A stretch of 64,000 nucleotides of DNA, from assembly GCA_907165135.1 (NCBI GenBank), contig OU015569.1, positions 11,160,001-11,224,000 of the forward strand, given 5' to 3'. The notes under the pieces are model-generated. The model was not told where the DNA came from, ran no database searches, and saw only the letters and a program-made list of their open reading frames with translations. This stretch comes from Oikopleura dioica. Taxonomy: Eukaryota > Animalia > Chordata. Positions 34,422-44,670 of the stretch are shown here, piece by piece. Within the stretch, counting starts at the first letter, position 1. Each line of letters starts with the position of its first letter. A program made the position numbers and the translations under genes.

Positions 34422-34772
34422 TCCTGCACATTTACTAAAAACTGAAATAAAAAAGCACTAAACTAGATCGCTTCTTTTGTTTTTTCTTTGCACGATAAAT
34501 TTATACCGGTACATTGAAAAGGCCAGAGCAAGTTAAGGATATATAATTTATATTAATTTATATTGTAAATTAGACGAGAATTAAATTGACGGTTGTAAGC
34601 GGTCATGTGGGTATTTATACCAACGTTCAGTGATTTCTCTGTCCGAATGCGGGTATAAATACCCATGTTCAATAAATGAAATTTTGTTTGAACGGTGGTA
34701 TATCAAACAACTTGCTCTAGAAACATAACGTATAACCTCAAAAAGACAAGTCCAGCATTAAGGGCGTAGGAC

Positions 34773-35244
34773 TGTTATAGTATGACTATAACGTATGACT
34801 GTTTTACTGCTTAGCATTTCTGCTACTGATCACTGTACGCGCCCAACGCGCGGCGACCTTTCCCTTTTCCCTTTTATGTCTATTGTTCACTACACCGCCA
34901 ATAATTTCGGCTGCTCCGCCGATATTCTCGCGCGGCGCTCCGATATTCTCGGAAAGGCCGAGAATATCCGCGGACGCTCTCCCAATATTCTTGGGCACTG
35001 CTCTGATATTCTCCAATAGGCCGAGAATATCCCCGTAGAAAAGTGATCACTATATAAGGAGAACACCCTCCATCAAATCAGTAACGTTCTCAGGGGTCAC
35101 TTTGAGCAAGACCTACGGCTTTATGCCTAGAGATTACTGTACTGAGACTGTGCTAGCGCTCGTCGCAGAATAAATCGGAAACGCTTATTAGCTTTTTACT
35201 ACAATTGTAGTGTGTCTTTATTTCACGCAAGCCATACTACAACA
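34773..35244 (+). repeat. 5' LTR (472 bp)
   Basis: TGTTATAG...CTACAACA; TATATAA 35051-35057; AATAAA 35169-35174; differs from the 3' LTR at 2 positions by eye. Confidence 0.97.
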
Positions 35245-35245
35245 T

Positions 35246-35258
35246 TGGTGTCAGAAGT
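35246..35258 (+). promoter_or_regulatory. Primer binding site, complementary to a tRNA-Leu(CAA)-type 3' end
   Basis: TGGTGTCAGAAGT one base after the LTR. Complementary to ...ACTTCTGACACCA, the 3' end of metazoan tRNA-Leu(CAA) as recalled. Confidence 0.8.
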
Positions 35259-36132
35259 ATAAAGAAACCCAGCCTCAGAGAAAAACACAAGAAGTATTCC
35301 GAAACCACACGCTTACCAGCTGCTACCTCCCTTGCGATCAAAGATGACACTTGTTAAGGTAAGGATAAATGGGTTATTAAGGGTATAGAGCCAGGGATTT
35401 TCACAGAAAGCGGAGCTTGCATCCTTAAGGGCAGCCACCGATAGGAAACCCTTTAGGCAACAATATGAAGTTTTTTTGAAAAGTATTCTTAAAAATAATC
35501 TTAAGGGTATACCTAGGCTTAACAAACTAGAATTGTTTTCCTGCGGTTTTCAGGTTGCAATAGAGAAAATTGTAGTTCGGATATTTTGTTCAGAATTTCA
35601 TGAGGATTTAAAGAAAAAATGTACCCAGATTTAATATTTGAGACTTGGCAAAAAGTGATGACTACACCCTTAAGATAAAATAGAAAGGGCAATTTTGAAT
35701 AATTTTTGATAAAGAGGGCATTGATAACTTATTTTTTTGAATCTAACCAATAATAAATATGGAATTTATAACATGAAAATTTCTATTTCAAAAACGATTA
35801 AAATCACTTAATAATCTTTTTCTCAATATTTTCTCTTTCAAGGAGCTGGAAAATACGCGAAAAATAGTGCGACTGATCACAAGAGAGACAAAATGCAGAA
35901 TGACGCCCAATTTCAAAAGCGAAAATTTAGGCGCTGAATGCATTAATATTAAAGGGCGAGCGCGTGCTCTGAATGGCTCCCATCACCTTTATTGACTTAG
36001 GCATCCAATCAGACGATAGAAGAAATAAATTATTCAGGAAGTGCACACCCTCTCAAAATCACCCTCTTTCAAAAAGGTAAGACTAACTTGTCTTCGAAAA
36101 TTGAAAATTTTCAATTTTTTGATATCGAGCAA

Positions 36133-37524
36133 ATGCCAATCAAATCAAAACAAATCCTTTACTATTTTGAAGATGGCACCGAAAAAGAAATGGTTTACCG
36201 CTATGTCCTTCCACGAGTCCTGTCAATATATCCACCAACCGAACATATACAGAAACCAGAGAAATGGCAAATAATTTTCGACATGATTGCGATTATTGAA
36301 GAAATCCGTAGAGACGCGACGGAATTCATAGCCACGCAAAACTTCTCCGTCGGACAATCAGAAGCTCTTTACAATCATTGGTTAATGTGCCAGTCAAGGA
36401 AAAAAAGAGACCAAAAGGAGCAATTAATTCTCTGGATCTGCAAAGCAACATTTGTGTGCGACGTTTGGAAATCAAAACATGGAAATATAACGGGAATCGG
36501 GACACAAGTGCGCGTTGCGTTTGATAAAATGTTCAATGGACAGCAAGAATTTTGGAGAAACTTCTTAAAGATCAAGACCAACTCCGAGATGAGAATTGCC
36601 AAAATAAAGATGGAAGAATTCGTGAGGAAAATTGAACATTCTTTCCATGAAGGAAGATCAACAACTTCTCAAGGATTTTCTGAGGGAAGGGATCCTAGAA
36701 ATTGGCAGGCTGAAACAGGCATGGTGTCGACGAGTCAAGATCCGGGACATTCTGTGAGAAACGAGAAAAGGGCACAACAAGTGATGGAGATAAATAAACC
36801 TCTAGTTCTCAATTTGCGATTTCAAGAGGTGTATTACGGATCGTTGAACAACAATGTCTCAGCTGTCGATGAAAGACACCTTCCGATTATTACCAAACAT
36901 CACAGTCAACAATCAAGCCTGCAGACAGAGAACCAACAACTGATGAATCAGACTGGAAACGGCGGAATTCAGCCAAGCCAACAAGCTTTCGACTCAACTG
37001 ATGCGACCGGCCCACCAGCTAAACGGCGAAAAATTGTCGGCGACAGTGACTCTTTCTTCATGGCAAATAATACTGGCGAGAAAATTAAAGCTGACGAATT
37101 GCCTGATAACGTTGACAAAATTTTGAATTCAGATGGTAGCCAGGAAAATTCTTCCGGAAATATGCATGAAGGGACACACACGCTGGAACCAAGCAATCAG
37201 CTACAGTCAGCAACTACTGACCAAGAAACTCATCGACAAACCAAAAGAGCGAGAACTCTTTCAGAGCAAGGATCAACAAATAATGACATGAACATTATTC
37301 TACCAAATCAAAGTGCCGAATCATGGAATAATAACAAGAGTATTCAACCAGATAAACGACCAACAAACGAAATTGGAGAGCCTTATCAAAACGATTCCAA
37401 CAATTTAGAACCTCCTTTGCCGTGCCTCGATGCAGACACCGACTTTGAATCTTTTTTTGCTCAACTTGAGGCGGACAATGTCAAGAAGTTCGATGAAACT
37501 TTCACCTACAACGGGAAGAATTAA
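36133..37524 (+). CDS. Accessory ORF upstream of gag (464 aa from first ATG), unknown; NLS and acidic C-terminus
   Basis: Uninterrupted ORF within the LTR element; PPAKRRK at 37012-37032; C-terminal DADTDFESFFAQLEAD; no signal peptide or TM segment. Confidence 0.85.
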   Translation: MPIKSKQILYYFEDGTEKEMVYRYVLPRVLSIYPPTEHIQKPEKWQIIFDMIAIIEEIRRDATEFIATQNFSVGQSEALYNHWLMCQSRKKRDQKEQLILWICKATFVCDVWKSKHGNITGIGTQVRVAFDKMFNGQQEFWRNFLKIKTNSEMRIAKIKMEEFVRKIEHSFHEGRSTTSQGFSEGRDPRNWQAETGMVSTSQDPGHSVRNEKRAQQVMEINKPLVLNLRFQEVYYGSLNNNVSAVDERHLPIITKHHSQQSSLQTENQQLMNQTGNGGIQPSQQAFDSTDATGPPAKRRKIVGDSDSFFMANNTGEKIKADELPDNVDKILNSDGSQENSSGNMHEGTHTLEPSNQLQSATTDQETHRQTKRARTLSEQGSTNNDMNIILPNQSAESWNNNKSIQPDKRPTNEIGEPYQNDSNNLEPPLPCLDADTDFESFFAQLEADNVKKFDETFTYNGKN

Positions 37525-37681
37525 ATCTCGCATTGCGAAAATTATTTCACTAATGACAGAATTTCTTTTACTGGAGTTCACCTCTCACTTCTCCTTAACT
37601 GTCTAGTCTGTTCGGGCATAAAAGACACTTAGCTTATCGAATTAAAATTTGTATGCTTTTAGACAAACGCAAATCTTTACA

Positions 37682-39157
37682 ATGAAACTTATCAAAATCA
37701 ACACAACACAAGCGAACGGAATTCCGAATAAAATCGCGATTCACGTGACCAAAGAAGATCTTGAAAGAGATCTTCAGCTGGCGGCGAAAGAAGCAGATTG
37801 TCCCGACACGTTCGTCTTGATAGCAGAAAGCTCAACAGGTATAGTTCAGAGACTTGGTGAGAACGAAGAGAAGCTACGCAAGTCAAGAACAAAAGCAGAA
37901 AGGATCTTGCGAGAAGACTTGGATGAAGCGATTTTCATCGAGGAGGATTATGCAACACGATCAAACATACTCATCGAAAACCAAGAGCAGACCAAGACAA
38001 ACAACATCTCAGAAGAAAAACGTGAAGGCGCAAGGCACGATAGACTCGAGAACCTTGAGAAAACCGTCAACGCGATCCAAAATGAGCTTCGAAATCTGCG
38101 AAAGCAAGGAGAGATGATTCTTACAGAGAGAGAGATGCAGATAAGCGCATTGAAAGTGATGGAAAAAGCCATGAACGATCTCAAAGAATACTTCGCAATG
38201 AAGAACTCGATGAGTGACAGCGAGGAAAACACTGAAGGAAATCAGAGGAATATCGCACACCTTCTAAATGAACAAGCAAAGGCGAGAGGAGAAGAAAGGA
38301 AAAGATTTGAGAAGGCGGAAGTCAAAAAATTTTTCGCGAATCCCGCAAAATTCAATATGGTATCCTGGACTGACGACGAAGACCTTACATTTGACGAGCA
38401 TTTAGCCAGAAACCGGATTGCTATACGAAACGCTCGAGAATCAGGACTTGCTGACAGCCAGTTAATCAATCTTTTTCTTCTTACGCTGAGACCAAGAGAC
38501 CACTACCTAGACGAGGTGGTTGGGGTGAAAGATCGTAAAGACTTCAAGACGTTCGTCAAAGCCCTTGGACGATATTTCAATGGATCCTCGTCAACCAGTA
38601 TGAACAAAGTTATAACGGCAAGAAGAAAACCGAATGAGAAACTTATCGAATTTTTCGTCCGATTACGATCCATGTATGAAATGACCGGAAGAGACCCTAG
38701 CAAAGGGGAGACACCAAACCTCTTTTACACGATCCTGCTGAACAATGCAACGATAGTTCAGAAGACCGAACTATTAAGGGACTTAGATGTTGAAAGAAGA
38801 AAAACAGCAATAACGTTAGAAGATCTTCAAAACGCAGTTTTGAAGGCCCAAACGGTGGATGATGAAAGCTTGGACGTAAACACCAATCATCGTGTGTACA
38901 ACATCGAGGATCAGCAAAGACAAAGAGGTTATGAAAAACGGAACGAAATGCCAAGATCAAGCTTCAGAAAGCCGATTGACAAATCAAACGCAGTCTGTTA
39001 CAACTGCGACTCTAAAGGGCACATGTGGCGTGACTGCCAAGAGCCCTTAAAGAAAAGATTTGTCCGAATAAAAGAAAGAACAAACCAACAACAAGGATAT
39101 CCGAGAGAGCCTAGAACCCCTCGAGGGACAGGCTATCGAGCGAACAAAAGCACCTAA
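37682..39157 (+). CDS. gag: Gag with CCHC zinc knuckle
   Basis: CYNCDSKGHMWRDC; capsid-like segment RRKPNEKLIEFFVRLR. Confidence 0.92.
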   Translation: MKLIKINTTQANGIPNKIAIHVTKEDLERDLQLAAKEADCPDTFVLIAESSTGIVQRLGENEEKLRKSRTKAERILREDLDEAIFIEEDYATRSNILIENQEQTKTNNISEEKREGARHDRLENLEKTVNAIQNELRNLRKQGEMILTEREMQISALKVMEKAMNDLKEYFAMKNSMSDSEENTEGNQRNIAHLLNEQAKARGEERKRFEKAEVKKFFANPAKFNMVSWTDDEDLTFDEHLARNRIAIRNARESGLADSQLINLFLLTLRPRDHYLDEVVGVKDRKDFKTFVKALGRYFNGSSSTSMNKVITARRKPNEKLIEFFVRLRSMYEMTGRDPSKGETPNLFYTILLNNATIVQKTELLRDLDVERRKTAITLEDLQNAVLKAQTVDDESLDVNTNHRVYNIEDQQRQRGYEKRNEMPRSSFRKPIDKSNAVCYNCDSKGHMWRDCQEPLKKRFVRIKERTNQQQGYPREPRTPRGTGYRANKST

Positions 39158-39182
39158 GCCAGCTGCGAATCGGCTTAGAAAT

Positions 39183-42100
39183 ATGGAAACGAAAACGGAA
39201 CCGGAACCGACTAAGAAAAAACCTTATCAAACACTTATTGTGTACGCCAATGTCAAGGCGAAAGCCCGCAATGGCGTCAAACAAGACGTATTGACTTTAC
39301 TCGATACAGGCGCAACCTACAGTTGCGCAAGCCTTGATTTCGCCGAAAGTCTTGAAAAGAACGGCTCCAAAATCATTAAAGAACGAACTCGTAGGGCTCA
39401 TCCAATCGCAGCTAAGGGAGGTAAAATGGAAATCGTCTATGACATTATACTGGATGTCACAATCAAAAGCTATCCTGATATTGTCTTCCCTTCAGTTCGC
39501 GTCAGTATTATACCTGGCCTTCGCGCGAAATTAATACTTGGATGTGACAGTCTCCAGAACCATACACTGCAGATAAATAGCAATTCTGCACTGATTGATG
39601 GTAGACCAGTGCAACTCGCGAGACAGAGGAACACAGTAACACTGAAAGTATTGGAGGCAAATGCTTCAAAGGGCTTCAATACCCTGAAACTTGCTGCCGA
39701 AGACCTTGCAGAAGAGAAGCAGCCCTCTAACCGAGTTTTACTCACCTTAGAATCCAGCTCATCGCCTGGTGTGCCGGACGTGTCTATGATCATGAAGTCA
39801 AGTGAGTTGAAAGCCGATTTCTTGATCACATACCCGGGCCCACCGACCACAGTACCGAAGATTTTCCTGGCCAGAATTGACTCGGTACCGGAAAACTCAG
39901 AAACCGAAACTCCTAGGGGATTGTCGGCTGATGATATCAATGATATTATATCAAAAACAGAGCTGAGCCCACAAGGCCAAGAGAAGCTGAAAGTCATTCT
40001 CGAGAAGCATTCCTGCTCATTCTCGAAGAAGAAGACCGACGTTGGAATATATAAAGGACCTAAAGTTAAACTGCAGTTACTTGACCCAAGACTCCCTGGA
40101 GCCTGGGTCCGACCGAAGAGAATACCCATCAGCCAGCAAGACTGGCTAAGAAAAGAACTTGACGCAATGCAGAAAGCTGGAATCATCGAAAAAGCTAAAG
40201 GAAGCCAATACAACGCAACACTTCAACTAGTCAAAACGACGACAGGAGAACATACCGTTTGTGTAGACATGCACTCGCTCAATCTCAGAATAGCTGGAAA
40301 TGACCGTCTTCAGGACGAACCGAAAGAGACCTTGGAAAAGCTGGAAGAAGCATCGTTCTTCAGCAAAATTGAGATTCAGCAGCCTTTTCTCCACATGAGC
40401 TTATGTGAGGAAAGCAGACCACTAACAGCATTCAGTGCACTTGACCAACAGTATCAATTCAAACGTATTCCACCAGGATTGAAGATTGCTCCCAATGTCT
40501 ACCAAATGGCATTAAATGAAACACTTGGAAACGTCATAAGTGATAGCTGTTTAGTTACTCTGAATGAGATCCTTGTGATCGACAAATCGGAAGAAGAGCA
40601 TCTTAGTGCTGTCGAGGAGGCGATTGATCGACTTACAAGCGCTGGATTCATTCTCGATCCGGAAAAATGCCTCTTCGCACGAAAGAGCATAAGCTTTCTT
40701 GGATACAGAATAACCCCTTCAGGATACTCCTCCGAGCATGACAACCTAGCTTCAATCAGAGATTATCCGGCTCCAACAAACAAGAGAGCTCTTCGTCGAT
40801 TCATCGGGATGTGCTCATACTACAGCTCGCTTATTCCAAGACTTAACTTTAAATTGGCGCCTTTATACAAAATGAGTGGAACAAAATCAGTTTATGACTG
40901 GGAAAATGAACATCAGAATGTGTTTGATGAGATAAAAGCAGCGATTCTACAACAGAATAAACTCGCCTTCCCATCACGTGATCCCGATTCGCAACTTATG
41001 GTAACAAGCGATGCGAGTCTCACGGGATACGGAGGAATGATAAGCCAGAAAATCGGCGACGAGCCTGAACGTCCACTTGGATACTGTAGTGGATTTTTCA
41101 AAGATTCACAACTGAAGTGGCCGATTCATGAGAAAGAAATGTATGCCTTCATCAAAACACTCGAAAATTTTCACCATCATTGCTACGGAAAATCATTTCT
41201 TTGGAGAACAGACAGTCGATGTCTTGCATTCATCTGCTCGGAAAATAAAACCGGACAGACAAAACGACCATCAGCAAAGAAAGCGCGGTGGCTCCAAAAA
41301 TTGAGCGAATACGATTTCGCGATCAAACATTTGGATGGAAAATCACGTGAAATGAGCGTTTGTGATAGCCTTAGCCGACTTGATCCACCTGAAGTTGTCA
41401 ACCATATCGATCATGCAACGGAAACCAAATTCAGAAGCCTTCATAAGGCGATACCAACATGGATCAAGCTCAAAGGAATCTCTAAAGCGGAGCTACGCGA
41501 ATGTCAAGACAAAGATGAGTCTCTTCTGAAATTCAAACACGACTGGAAACCATTGAAAGGAAAATATAAGCTCAAACTTGCTGAAGACGGAATCTTCATC
41601 TTGGTAGGGAAAGTTGATCGGATACCAATACCAATGGAGTTACAGAAGAGAATCATTTCAGCTTACCATCTTCCACAACACGCGCGAGTAACAAATATGA
41701 TCGAAGCAATGAGGAAATCTGGAATCTTGTTCCCTGGAATGTCACGTAAAACAAAAGACTACATCAAACAATGCCCAGCTTGTATTACGATGGCAGCGTT
41801 GGAGAAACCCAAAATTTTACCAGTAGCAGCTCCGAAAGAACAACATCCATACATGACCGTAACCATCGACCTTCTCGGACCCCTGCCATCGACTCCAACA
41901 CGCAAGAAATACATATTGGCGGCAATATGCAATCTGACTCGCTGGATAGAGCTCAGGCCCATCGTGGATAAATCAGCACCTCATGTTGCTAAAGCAATAA
42001 TCGATATATTTTTCCTAAGAGGACCACCACGGGCAGTTTCTTGCGACAATGGAAAAGAATTCTCCAACAGCATCCTAAAAGAACTACTTACGTCCTTTGG

Positions 42101-42698
42101 AACCTGCATCAACTATGGAACACCTTATAGGCCGCAAGGACAAGGCCTGATAGAACGAGCAAACCGTGAGATCGTCAAACATCTCAAAGCGTTAAACATA
42201 GAAGAGAACCGATGGGACACTTACATCCCATCAATCCAACTGTCAATGAACCTTAGCTACCACTCAGCCTTGGGCTCAAGCCCCTTTCAAGCCATTCATG
42301 GCTGGACTCTAGCCGAACCATTTTGTAACACTACCTACAATGGTGAAGAAATCCCCGAAGATGTCCGACTATGGGTTAAAGAGTCGGGAGCTCGAATGTG
42401 TGCTGCACTCTCGCAACTAGTTGCGAAGCAAGCAGTAGCATCGACGGAGATACCTGACGATACTGATTCTAATGGGATAGATACTGGAACAGAAGTTCTT
42501 TTAAAAACTATGATTCCACCAGGAGTAAGTGGAAAACTCTACACTCCTTGGAAAAGAGGATTTGTCGTTAGAAAAAGATGCGACAAATATACGTACATTG
42601 TTACCCCGATCGAAGCTCCTAGGCGGCGATTTCTTGTGCATCGCGATCGCATACGCATCCTGCACCGGAATCTTAAGAATTCGCCAAAGGTAAAATGA
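39183..42698 (+). CDS. pol: Pol polyprotein (protease, degenerate RT, RNase H, integrase)
   Basis: LLDTGAT; RT scaffold with TLNE in place of YLDD; TSDAS/HEKE/RTDS/CDSLSR RNase H; H..H..CPAC zinc site, DLLGP, DNG, GLIERAN integrase. Confidence 0.95.
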   Translation: METKTEPEPTKKKPYQTLIVYANVKAKARNGVKQDVLTLLDTGATYSCASLDFAESLEKNGSKIIKERTRRAHPIAAKGGKMEIVYDIILDVTIKSYPDIVFPSVRVSIIPGLRAKLILGCDSLQNHTLQINSNSALIDGRPVQLARQRNTVTLKVLEANASKGFNTLKLAAEDLAEEKQPSNRVLLTLESSSSPGVPDVSMIMKSSELKADFLITYPGPPTTVPKIFLARIDSVPENSETETPRGLSADDINDIISKTELSPQGQEKLKVILEKHSCSFSKKKTDVGIYKGPKVKLQLLDPRLPGAWVRPKRIPISQQDWLRKELDAMQKAGIIEKAKGSQYNATLQLVKTTTGEHTVCVDMHSLNLRIAGNDRLQDEPKETLEKLEEASFFSKIEIQQPFLHMSLCEESRPLTAFSALDQQYQFKRIPPGLKIAPNVYQMALNETLGNVISDSCLVTLNEILVIDKSEEEHLSAVEEAIDRLTSAGFILDPEKCLFARKSISFLGYRITPSGYSSEHDNLASIRDYPAPTNKRALRRFIGMCSYYSSLIPRLNFKLAPLYKMSGTKSVYDWENEHQNVFDEIKAAILQQNKLAFPSRDPDSQLMVTSDASLTGYGGMISQKIGDEPERPLGYCSGFFKDSQLKWPIHEKEMYAFIKTLENFHHHCYGKSFLWRTDSRCLAFICSENKTGQTKRPSAKKARWLQKLSEYDFAIKHLDGKSREMSVCDSLSRLDPPEVVNHIDHATETKFRSLHKAIPTWIKLKGISKAELRECQDKDESLLKFKHDWKPLKGKYKLKLAEDGIFILVGKVDRIPIPMELQKRIISAYHLPQHARVTNMIEAMRKSGILFPGMSRKTKDYIKQCPACITMAALEKPKILPVAAPKEQHPYMTVTIDLLGPLPSTPTRKKYILAAICNLTRWIELRPIVDKSAPHVAKAIIDIFFLRGPPRAVSCDNGKEFSNSILKELLTSFGTCINYGTPYRPQGQGLIERANREIVKHLKALNIEENRWDTYIPSIQLSMNLSYHSALGSSPFQAIHGWTLAEPFCNTTYNGEEIPEDVRLWVKESGARMCAALSQLVAKQAVASTEIPDDTDSNGIDTGTEVLLKTMIPPGVSGKLYTPWKRGFVVRKRCDKYTYIVTPIEAPRRRFLVHRDRIRILHRNLKNSPKVK

Positions 42699-43763
42699 CA
42701 TGTCAGAAAAAGTGTATGTTGATGGCTAAAAGGAAATACCTAGGAGCAGACGACACTTCAGGAGAAGAATAACGATACAGAAGGAATCGTTAAACCGCAT
42801 GAAGATTCGGTAGTTAATAGTCAGGCGCCACCAGTAGAAAATGAAGAGGAAATATCAACATCAGCGGTGCCTAGAAGAAAGACTAGAGGACAGAAAGTGT
42901 CGTATAGTAAGTTTTTCTGAGACATGAAGCAAAGGATAGAAGATCGTCCTCCAAGAAACTCCATGTCTACAACTCACGCAGAAGAGACAGAAAACGTCGA
43001 TTCGGGAAGAGACTTCACTGCGAAATCCAAATATGTTCACCTCGATAATTCTTTCTGCGAATAAGCCGAGTCAAAGACAAAAGCTAACTCTGACTTATTT
43101 AGATAACTCGAGGTCAACGAAATGCAAAAAAAAAAACCAAACAATAACGCACTTTATCATCACCAAACTATGCAATTTGATAAGGGAAGCACGGAAAGTT
43201 TACGGATCCATGACGGAGAAATAGAAGAAAAATCAAACAACTCGCCCAAAAAAAAAAAAAAGAAAAAAAAAGTCAGCTACAACGAATACTTAGAACTTGG
43301 AACACGTTCTAATCGAAGGGAGGAGAGAAGAGGAAAGAAGTGAATCTTCTTTAGTTATTCTGGACCGCTCACATAACAAAAAATTTTCTAATTCTTCTGA
43401 CAACTCGTACCTTCGTTGATCGAAGACTTCATAATTTCAGAAGCCTTACATGAAAAGCACCGTGATCGGATTAAGTCTGGAGAAAAAAGCGACATCTACA
43501 CGTCTCGAAAAAGACCTTAATCGACATCTTTCCCACTCAAACATTCACTTTCTTCTTTCGATTGTGGACAAAAGTCAACGTTTTCAGTGTTTCACGGAAA
43601 GGATGATTGAATTGTCGGAACTCTGGTCTTACAAGCGCGCAAAAACCCTGGCAAAATAAAATTGCTGCAACAGAAATTGACTGAACTACAGTACTTTATC
43701 AGTATCACCTGAAAAACAATCCGAAATCGATGAATTAACATTGATGCACAAGTGTTAATTAAT

Positions 43764-43777
43764 GAAGGAGGGAAGAG
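43764..43777 (+). promoter_or_regulatory. Polypurine tract
   Basis: GAAGGAGGGAAGAG abutting the 3' LTR. Confidence 0.9.
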
Positions 43778-44249
43778 TGTTATAGTATGACTATAACGTA
43801 TGACTGTTTTACTGCTTAGCATTTCTGCTACTGATCACTGTACGCGCCCAACGCGCGGCGACCTTTCCCTTTTCCCTTTTATGTCTATTGTTCACTACAC
43901 CGCCAATAATTTCGGCTGCTCCGCCGATATTCTCGCGCGGCGCTCCGATATTCTCGGAAAGGCCGAGAATATCCGCGGACGCCCCCCCAATATTCTTGGG
44001 CACTGCTCTGATATTCTCCAATAGGCCGAGAATATCCCCGTAGAAAAGTGATCACTATATAAGGAGAACACCCTCCATCAAATCAGTAACGTTCTCAGGG
44101 GTCACTTTGAGCAAGACCTACGGCTTTATGCCTAGAGATTACTGTACTGAGACTGTGCTAGCGCTCGTCGCAGAATAAATCGGAAACGCTTATTAGCTTT
44201 TTACTACAATTGTAGTGTGTCTTTATTTCACGCAAGCCATACTACAACA
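43778..44249 (+). repeat. 3' LTR (472 bp)
   Basis: Identical to the 5' LTR except CTCTCCC>CCCCCCC at ~43982-43988. Confidence 0.97.
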
Positions 44250-44670
44250 GGACAGCCCGGTCAGCAGCCGAAGCTGGTTCCCCAGTCGGAGACAGTATGC
44301 GCTCCGCGCCTGTCTTGAAGGATTCTCCAAAAATTTTCAAGTTAAAGCTATAAAATGAACCTTTTTGTACGTCCGAAAATCGGTGTGTTTCCCGTCTTCA
44401 TCGAAACAGATGAGGCTCTAGAACAGAACTGTTTTCAAAAAGCCTGGAAAATACCCCCGTTCGCCAGTAAGTGTGAACGTGGGTATCGAATACCCATGTT
44501 CGGAAGAAAGAGTGAACGTGGGTATAAATACCCACGTTCGGGGGGAACAGTGAACGCGGGTATAATACCCACATGACCGCATACCACCGTATTGACTAAA
44601 TTATGCGTAAAATGTTATTTGTAGTAGATATATTTGATGAAATCTATAATAAAATGAAATGACAGACTAT

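Follow-up and report, generated by a model that had tools for sequence, protein, structure and literature searches.

A Ty3/gypsy retrotransposon family of Oikopleura dioica with a substituted reverse transcriptase active site and a candidate helper family in the same genome

A stretch of 64,000 nt from the Oikopleura dioica genome (assembly GCA_907165135.1, contig OU015569.1, positions 11,160,001 to 11,224,000; the whole stretch is referred to as the window) contains a long terminal repeat (LTR) retrotransposon of 9.5 kb whose reverse transcriptase (RT) has lost all three catalytic aspartates of its polymerase. By every structural criterion except this RT catalytic triad, it is a Ty3/gypsy element: TG..CA ends of the LTRs, a target-site duplication, a primer-binding site (PBS), a polypurine tract (PPT), a gag with CCHC knuckle, and a pol order of the Metaviridae type were all found (Table 1). 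The lineage has nevertheless been reverse-transcribed and integrated at least twice with its RT in this state. Our best explanation, to which we assign a probability of about one half, is a semi-autonomous, Tor-like Ty3/gypsy family whose polymerase is supplied in trans, with a 37-kb sister family of the same genome as the helper. In the following, we refer to the family of the window element as the altered-RT family.

The RT was aligned with that of the sister family (55–57% identity), with two metagenomic proteins (59–61%), with more distant relatives, and with the Ty3 RT (4OL8). Glutamate replaces the motif A aspartate, and TLNE replaces the Y(L/M)DD found in all aligned relatives. An original prediction, made from the letters of the window alone, had read both changes, and the alignments agree with it; the codons are in frame within a pol open reading frame (ORF) of 1,171 codons. 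The further RT changes that it listed were recovered against the nearest relatives, whose GGYR, DMRALN and LPMG appear as GEHT, DMHSLN and IPPG, and the WPLP of the relatives (WPxP) is absent. The hallmarks lost besides the catalytic aspartates are the arginine residues of the fingers, WPxP and motif B. In a separate alignment to the Ty3 RT (E = 3e-38), D151, D213 and D214 are paired with E, N and E, respectively.

Profile matches show the same pattern. The Pfam model RVT_1 scores 62.2 bits (cut-off 29.6) and covers profile positions 55–205 only, compared to 98–106 bits over positions 1–205 in canonical relatives; the fingers part is no longer matched. The RNase H models RT_RNaseH_2 and RT_RNaseH reach 76–78 bits, equal to canonical relatives. 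Along this line, DTG of the protease, D-E-D-D of RNase H and HHCC/DDE of the integrase, which had been reported as intact, are the same as in the canonical relatives.

Such an RT is exceptional among its relatives. The other 28 best-scoring RT loci of the genome all show the D...DD pattern. Among 227 RT stretches from the 147 nearest cluster representatives of a library of 1.8 billion proteins, 215 are fully canonical and not a single one has all three aspartates replaced. The D151E mutant of the Ty3 RT retains 2% activity, and in the D213N mutant both RNA- and DNA-dependent synthesis are abolished (PMC5371799). The element combines the equivalents of these two inactivating states, and it has lost the fingers arginines and other hallmarks as well; by analogy with the Ty3 mutants, its RT polymerase is therefore very probably dead.

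The state is shared by copies at different loci. The genome searched was the O. dioica OKI2018_I69 assembly with 64,281,565 bases in 19 pieces, of which C2 carries the window copy and C1, C3 and C4 carry other copies. A second full copy was located via its LTR at C4:6506658-6516439, on a different chromosome and between flanks unrelated to those of the window copy. Its LTRs are identical (474/474), its target-site duplication is CCCT, its pol frame is open over 1,206 codons, and the RT motifs are altered in the same way as in the window copy. The two copies are diverged by about 5%, and LTRs of different copies differ at 24–26 of 472 positions. A third copy (C1:13388576-13392961), whose LTRs show four mismatches, is without gag and almost all of pol: its ORF1 region abuts the final 200 nt of pol, and ORF1 itself is open over 519 codons. 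The LTR pairs of the two full copies are 99.6–100% identical.

Since the altered RT is shared by two diverged, independent young insertions, the loss of the catalytic residues is a family trait which predates at least two reverse-transcription events. Two lineages, about 5% apart, have each very recently been reverse-transcribed from a template encoding the altered RT, and the internally deleted copy probably reflects a third transposition event. This is in agreement with the original prediction, which dated the RT changes before the last reverse transcription and proposed to look for TLNE and KIE (the altered motif A) in multiple insertions with different target-site duplications; two such insertions, flanked by GGAC and CCCT, were found. 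A loss shared by young insertions indicates a lineage that moves without a polymerase of its own. The predicted non-autonomous lineage is thus supported, with the inactivity of its RT deduced from D151E and D213N of Ty3 (PMC5371799).

Contigs of other individuals (including X3 and X5), together with contigs of another study, span the RT region without gaps at 97–99% identity, the individual letter differences having been read upstream of position 40371 only. The assembly holds no RT copies at 55%–94% identity, and nothing above 40% identity to the family occurs in metagenome contigs. A search of a protein collection with pol residues 290–720 (RT to RNase H) returned only canonical relatives of at most 61% identity. 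A query with a 200-residue fragment gave no family matches, and a library of 50% clusters contained no family members.

The domains of pol have evolved under unequal constraint, as a comparison of the window and C4 copies by domain, suggested in the original prediction, reveals. The ratio of non-synonymous to synonymous substitution rates (dN/dS) is 0.15 for the whole of pol (0.152, p = 3e-22), 0.075 for the integrase, 0.13 for RNase H, 0.10 for RNase H and integrase jointly, 0.21 for the protease, and 0.32 for gag. The RT domain shows 0.41, from 11 synonymous and 16 non-synonymous changes (one-sided p = 0.02). Indels between the copies are all multiples of three within the ORFs, none of them inside the RT, whereas the non-coding parts show many other indels.

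Amino acid changes against the relatives are distributed accordingly. Considering sites that are invariant in four canonical relatives, and counting those changed in both copies of the altered-RT family, 34% are altered in the RT fingers-palm, 22% in the RT palm-thumb, 12% in RNase H and 8% in the integrase (fingers-palm versus integrase, Fisher p = 4e-4). At 140 fingers-palm sites, 41 private changes fall on the branch of the altered-RT family and six on the sister branch; at 289 integrase sites, the numbers are 29 and 25 (changes unpolarised in both cases). In a canonical pair (P0001 and P0002), RT is as constrained as the integrase, with dN/dS of about 0.04–0.05 at saturated dS. In the altered-RT family, the polymerase part is strongly relaxed while the remaining pol is clearly maintained.

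Among the RT-competent elements of the assembly, only the 37-kb sister family is a close relative; it is represented by two copies and is 55–57% identical to the altered-RT family. Its motifs are canonical (SCVD and YLDD), and the C1 copy has gag and a pol frame of 1,343 codons; pol lies in the +1 frame relative to gag, an arrangement common to both families. A string of 23 nt, composed of the LTR end and the PBS, is exact in both families and has no other mismatch-free site in the genome. Furthermore, the families have in common the PPT core, the TGTTAT..AACA termini, and a 51-nt block inside the LTR with TATA box and presumed start site, in which the 5' LTR of the window copy is 86% identical to the sister LTR. 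The sister LTR pairs are 99.7–100% identical and thus indicate activity as recent as that of the altered-RT family. An RT-competent element with the same PBS and LTR ends, which had been proposed as a further check, therefore exists in the same genome. In wheat, dependent LTR elements were paired with their partners by shared PBS, conserved termini, promoter similarity and simultaneous activity (PMC9744471), and all four are observed between the altered-RT and sister families. On these sequence comparisons, the sister family appears to be the most likely polymerase donor in this genome.

According to our explanation, a polymerase supplied in trans would reverse-transcribe the RNA of the altered-RT family, while the family's own Gag, protease, RNase H and integrase would still be in use. 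For protease, RNase H and integrase, this use is suggested by their conservation.

Several observations weigh against this explanation. Neutrality of the RT domain is rejected, albeit weakly, and the domain is perhaps not wholly free of constraint. Only two full copies plus one deletion derivative are present in the assembly. The gag of the altered-RT family is merely 36% identical to the sister gag in the C-terminal half, so that co-assembly with the sister is uncertain, and a homologue of ORF1 is absent from the 37-kb sister element when both elements are compared. Given this mismatch in gag and ORF1, the route by which a helper polymerase and RNA of the altered-RT family would be brought into one particle is a matter of conjecture. 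A regulatory role of ORF1, raised in the original prediction, is conjectural as well. In addition, dS between the two full copies is a mosaic of 0.04–0.05 in ORF1, protease and RT, 0.11–0.16 in RNase H-integrase, and 0.32 in gag, which implies that lineages of the family have recombined. Due to such recombination, a share of the constraint on gag, RNase H and integrase may go back to ancestors whose RT was competent. Finally, two oligo-dT RNA runs labelled O. dioica contributed no reads to positions 37600–43000, where the label spans deeply diverged lineages and presence of the organism itself is unproven.

A closer helper may also have escaped sampling, since the assembly derives from one male and merging of haplotypes shrank it from 99.3 to 64.3 Mb (PMC8008620), and since most insertions of Tor elements are hemizygous and polymorphic (PMC4402516). 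This leads to the main rival, in which the altered-RT family is an ordinary defective subfamily and the sister family is not involved; polymerase would come from within the family, from an RT-competent member that the assembly does not contain or that was recently lost. Besides the reduced assembly and the polymorphic insertions, the recombination among diverged family lineages favours this possibility, and a helper from the same family would have the best-matched Gag and cis signals. However, the assembly holds no copy between 55% and 94% RT identity, no family member turned up in the protein or metagenome collections, and the RT branch is long. Its 41 private changes at 140 fingers-palm sites indicate that the altered segment is long-lived and was never swapped by recombination for a working one. 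We consider a helper from the same family possible but rather unlikely, and rank it below the sister family.

It is improbable that the RT is still active, using Glu, Asn and Glu as a non-canonical metal site, and that the family is autonomous. Two carboxylates are left at this site, Ty3 RT retains reduced activity with D214E and in vitro partly tolerates D213E (PMC5371799), and the domain is of full length, free of indels and evolves at a dN/dS of about 0.4. In contrast, the states equivalent to D151E and D213N leave 2% and no activity in Ty3, where mutants of the catalytic aspartates are each lethal for transposition in vivo (PMC5371799). Moreover, fingers arginine, WPxP, motif B and the Pfam match of the fingers are all lost in the element, and replacement of all three aspartates is without precedent among the 227 related RT stretches.

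Even less credit is due to the idea that the altered RT is kept mainly for interference, as a dominant-negative subunit or competitor which would make the family a parasite of, or a brake on, the sister family. To judge from the asymmetry of the Ty3 subunits, a polymerase-dead subunit that dimerises or binds template would poison some helper complexes, and the nucleic-acid-binding parts of thumb and RNase H are conserved. Interference would, however, be a side effect of dependence in trans, and it does not explain how the altered-RT family itself is copied. It is compatible with the sister-family explanation.

An artefact, i.e., an assembly error, a segmental duplication, or LTR gene conversion in copies that died after insertion, could be invoked for a Nanopore-based assembly (PMC8008620) but is hardly credible, as the copies occupy separate chromosomes, differ in their flanks and 4-bp duplications and are 5% apart, clusters of missense changes would be atypical of Nanopore error, short-read-derived contigs from other individuals span the region, and the third, internally deleted copy has near-identical LTRs, too. 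In particular, assembly error or copy-specific damage is ruled out by the same states in the C4 copy and by the contigs of other individuals, and segmental duplication by the differing flanks and target-site duplications. LTRs, target duplications and several diverged copies likewise rule out a domesticated host gene. ORF1 was considered as a hidden polymerase and rejected: it matches no Pfam family, evolves fast (dN/dS 0.63–0.84, yet open in all three copies) and resembles a nuclear acidic protein.

Within the sister-family explanation, the altered RT might have a function of its own. The original prediction had envisaged a pseudo-RT retained as a scaffold or RNase H donor; the constraint observed on the RT domain (dN/dS of about 0.4) is weak. 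Among solved structures, the Ty3 RT (4OL8) is the closest homologue and shares the domain layout, and the states of the element match its engineered mutants D151E, D213N and D214E. Polymerase activity of the Ty3 dimer resides in subunit A, RNase H activity in subunit B (PMC5371799). By this division of labour, a polymerase-dead subunit can in principle still provide RNase H, and RNase H is intact in the altered protein, with D, E, D, D kept, normal Pfam scores and a dN/dS of 0.13. Speculatively, a mixed RT dimer could form in the manner of Ty3, with the helper RT in the polymerase (A) position and the altered RT contributing RNase H from the B position. That the altered RT is a dedicated non-polymerising subunit, pairing asymmetrically with the RT of the 37-kb sister family, strikes us as a doubtful extension of the Ty3 analogy. 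Whereas Ty3 forms a homodimer of identical subunits that are both capable of activity, a dimer that joins an active RT to the inactive RT of another element is only proposed for the Oikopleura pair. We know of no natural example of such a dimer. Telesnitsky and Goff reportedly showed in 1993 that polymerase-defective and RNase H-defective RTs complement each other when co-packaged in particles of murine leukaemia virus (MLV). There, polymerase and RNase H come from different Pol molecules in one particle, but in a laboratory construct with a single virus, while here, a lineage in nature is proposed to depend on a relative of 57% identity.

Dependent LTR retrotransposons as such are familiar; deletions or disrupted genes are their usual origin, and most of them retain little coding capacity. 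LARD, TRIM and ETn/MusD elements, for instance, are mobilised in trans by a related autonomous family with common cis signals and have lost most or all of their coding capacity. The altered-RT family differs from them in that gag, protease, RNase H and integrase are kept under selection. The difference lies in which function is lost, namely polymerase chemistry, and how, namely by many substitutions; our literature searches found no description of polymerase loss by substitution in a retained in-frame RT with conserved RNase H. A close parallel is given by semi-autonomous families of cereals, in which BARE2 has a disrupted gag and an intact pol, and Sabrina_SA encodes only Gag-protease (PMC9744471). 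In both settings, one function is lost, the other coding parts are intact, and the partner, here a candidate, is recognised by PBS, termini, promoter and activity. The cereal families, however, lose Gag by disruption or RT-integrase by deletion, as opposed to substitutions in a full-length, in-frame RT with a conserved fused RNase H.

Tor elements of Oikopleura carry 4-5-bp duplications and near-identical LTRs (PMC4402516). By host, duplications and LTRs, the element is therefore placed among these Ty3/gypsy elements, with which it also shares the LTR-gag-pol layout and intact ORFs in young copies (PMC4402516, PMC8008620). In contrast to the altered-RT family, the Tor elements described so far are regarded as autonomous, and in some of them env follows pol; the altered-RT family lacks env and the RT catalytic residues and carries an additional ORF ahead of gag.

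If the sister-family explanation is true, the two families are a natural counterpart to the engineered separation of polymerase from RNase H in Ty3 and MLV, and a tractable pair of elements in a chordate genome of 64 Mb. With this pair, one could ask what recognition between helper and dependant is based on, whether RT dimers or particles are mixed, and whether dependants restrain their helpers. Should the dimer of altered and sister RT exist as well, it would amount to a naturally occurring reverse transcriptase made by two elements, and the two retrotransposon families would live in a stable partnership, or one would parasitise the other. For annotators, the element is a warning that young LTRs and an intact pol ORF are no proof of autonomy.

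Coordinates of all features are collected in Table 1. The LTR identity, the GGAC duplication, the PBS and the PPT given in the original prediction were confirmed.

Table 1. Features of the window element (window coordinates) and the two copies of the sister family (coordinates on assembly pieces C1 and C4).
Feature	Position	Strand	Basis or remarks
Complete Ty3/gypsy-type LTR retrotransposon, 9.5 kb	34773-44249	+	LTRs, GGAC duplication, three ORFs
Target-site duplication GGAC, 5' copy	34769-34772	+	matches 44250-44253 exactly
5' LTR, 472 nt, ends TGTTAT...AACA	34773-35244	+	LTR-LTR alignment, 2 mismatches
PBS TGGTGTCAGAAGTATAAA, TGG-initiated	35246-35263	+	directly 3' of 5' LTR
ORF1, 478 codons	36088-37524	+	PAKRRKI, resembling a nuclear localisation signal; acidic C-terminal tail
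gag, 502 codons, CCHC zinc knuckle	37649-39157	+	Pfam zf-CCHC
Open pol frame overlapping gag end, 86 nt	39072-39157	+	frame arithmetic
pol ORF, 1,171 codons, order protease-RT-RNase H-integrase	39183-42698	+	Pfam, ORF list
Aspartic protease domain, DTG intact	39282-39560	+	Pfam matches under cut-off; LLDTGA common to relatives
RT polymerase domain (fingers, palm, thumb)	40053-40862	+	full length, zero indels, active-site hallmarks lost
GAG (Glu) at motif A catalytic Asp, Ty3 D151	40371-40373	+	alignments
ACT CTG AAT GAG = TLNE at YLDD position, Ty3 Y211-D214	40557-40568	+	alignments
RNase H domain, catalytic D, E, D, D intact	40899-41312	+	Pfam RT_RNaseH_2, RT_RNaseH
Integrase zinc finger (HHCC) and catalytic core (DDE)	41628-42134	+	Pfam Integrase_H2C2, rve
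PPT GAAGGAGGGAAGAG	43764-43777	+	adjoins 3' LTR; sister element: AAGGAGGGTAAAG
3' LTR	43778-44249	+	pairs with 5' LTR, 470/472 identical
Target-site duplication GGAC, 3' copy	44250-44253	+	matches 5' copy
Sister copy, 37,362 nt	C1:15279698-15317059		LTR pair 307/307 identical; duplication CCGT
Sister copy, 37,377 nt	C4:3697268-3734644		LTR pair 306/307 identical; duplication AGAG

The complement of the PBS occurs in the genome at chance frequency only, and no primer tRNA was assigned. On the minus strand of the window, an antisense ORF of 247 codons (39470-40213) lies opposite the linker between protease and RT and is probably a chance ORF. An indel of 284 nt at window position 43256, 3' of pol, distinguishes the window and C4 copies.

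Further traces of the altered-RT family are found on the repeat-rich piece C3. At C3:2230977-2231533, a 5' LTR of the family precedes two PBS strings that are spaced by 65 nt; as there is no RT downstream, this is a truncated or rearranged copy. C3 also contains an LTR fragment of the family.

At about 37.4 kb, the sister element is a giant among LTR retrotransposons, and it has no nested LTR pair inside. Upstream, the element has a second gag-like ORF. 3' of pol, it comprises approximately 13 kb of ORFs on the same strand, including an ORF with a connexin domain (PF00029, E = 2.9e-18, L048:2879-3880). With two mismatches (…AGTATTGA or …AGTATTTA), the string of LTR end and PBS reappears at C1:550407, C3:2113360, C3:2274783 and C3:2441220, and the sequence of these four sites suggests a third family using the same primer.

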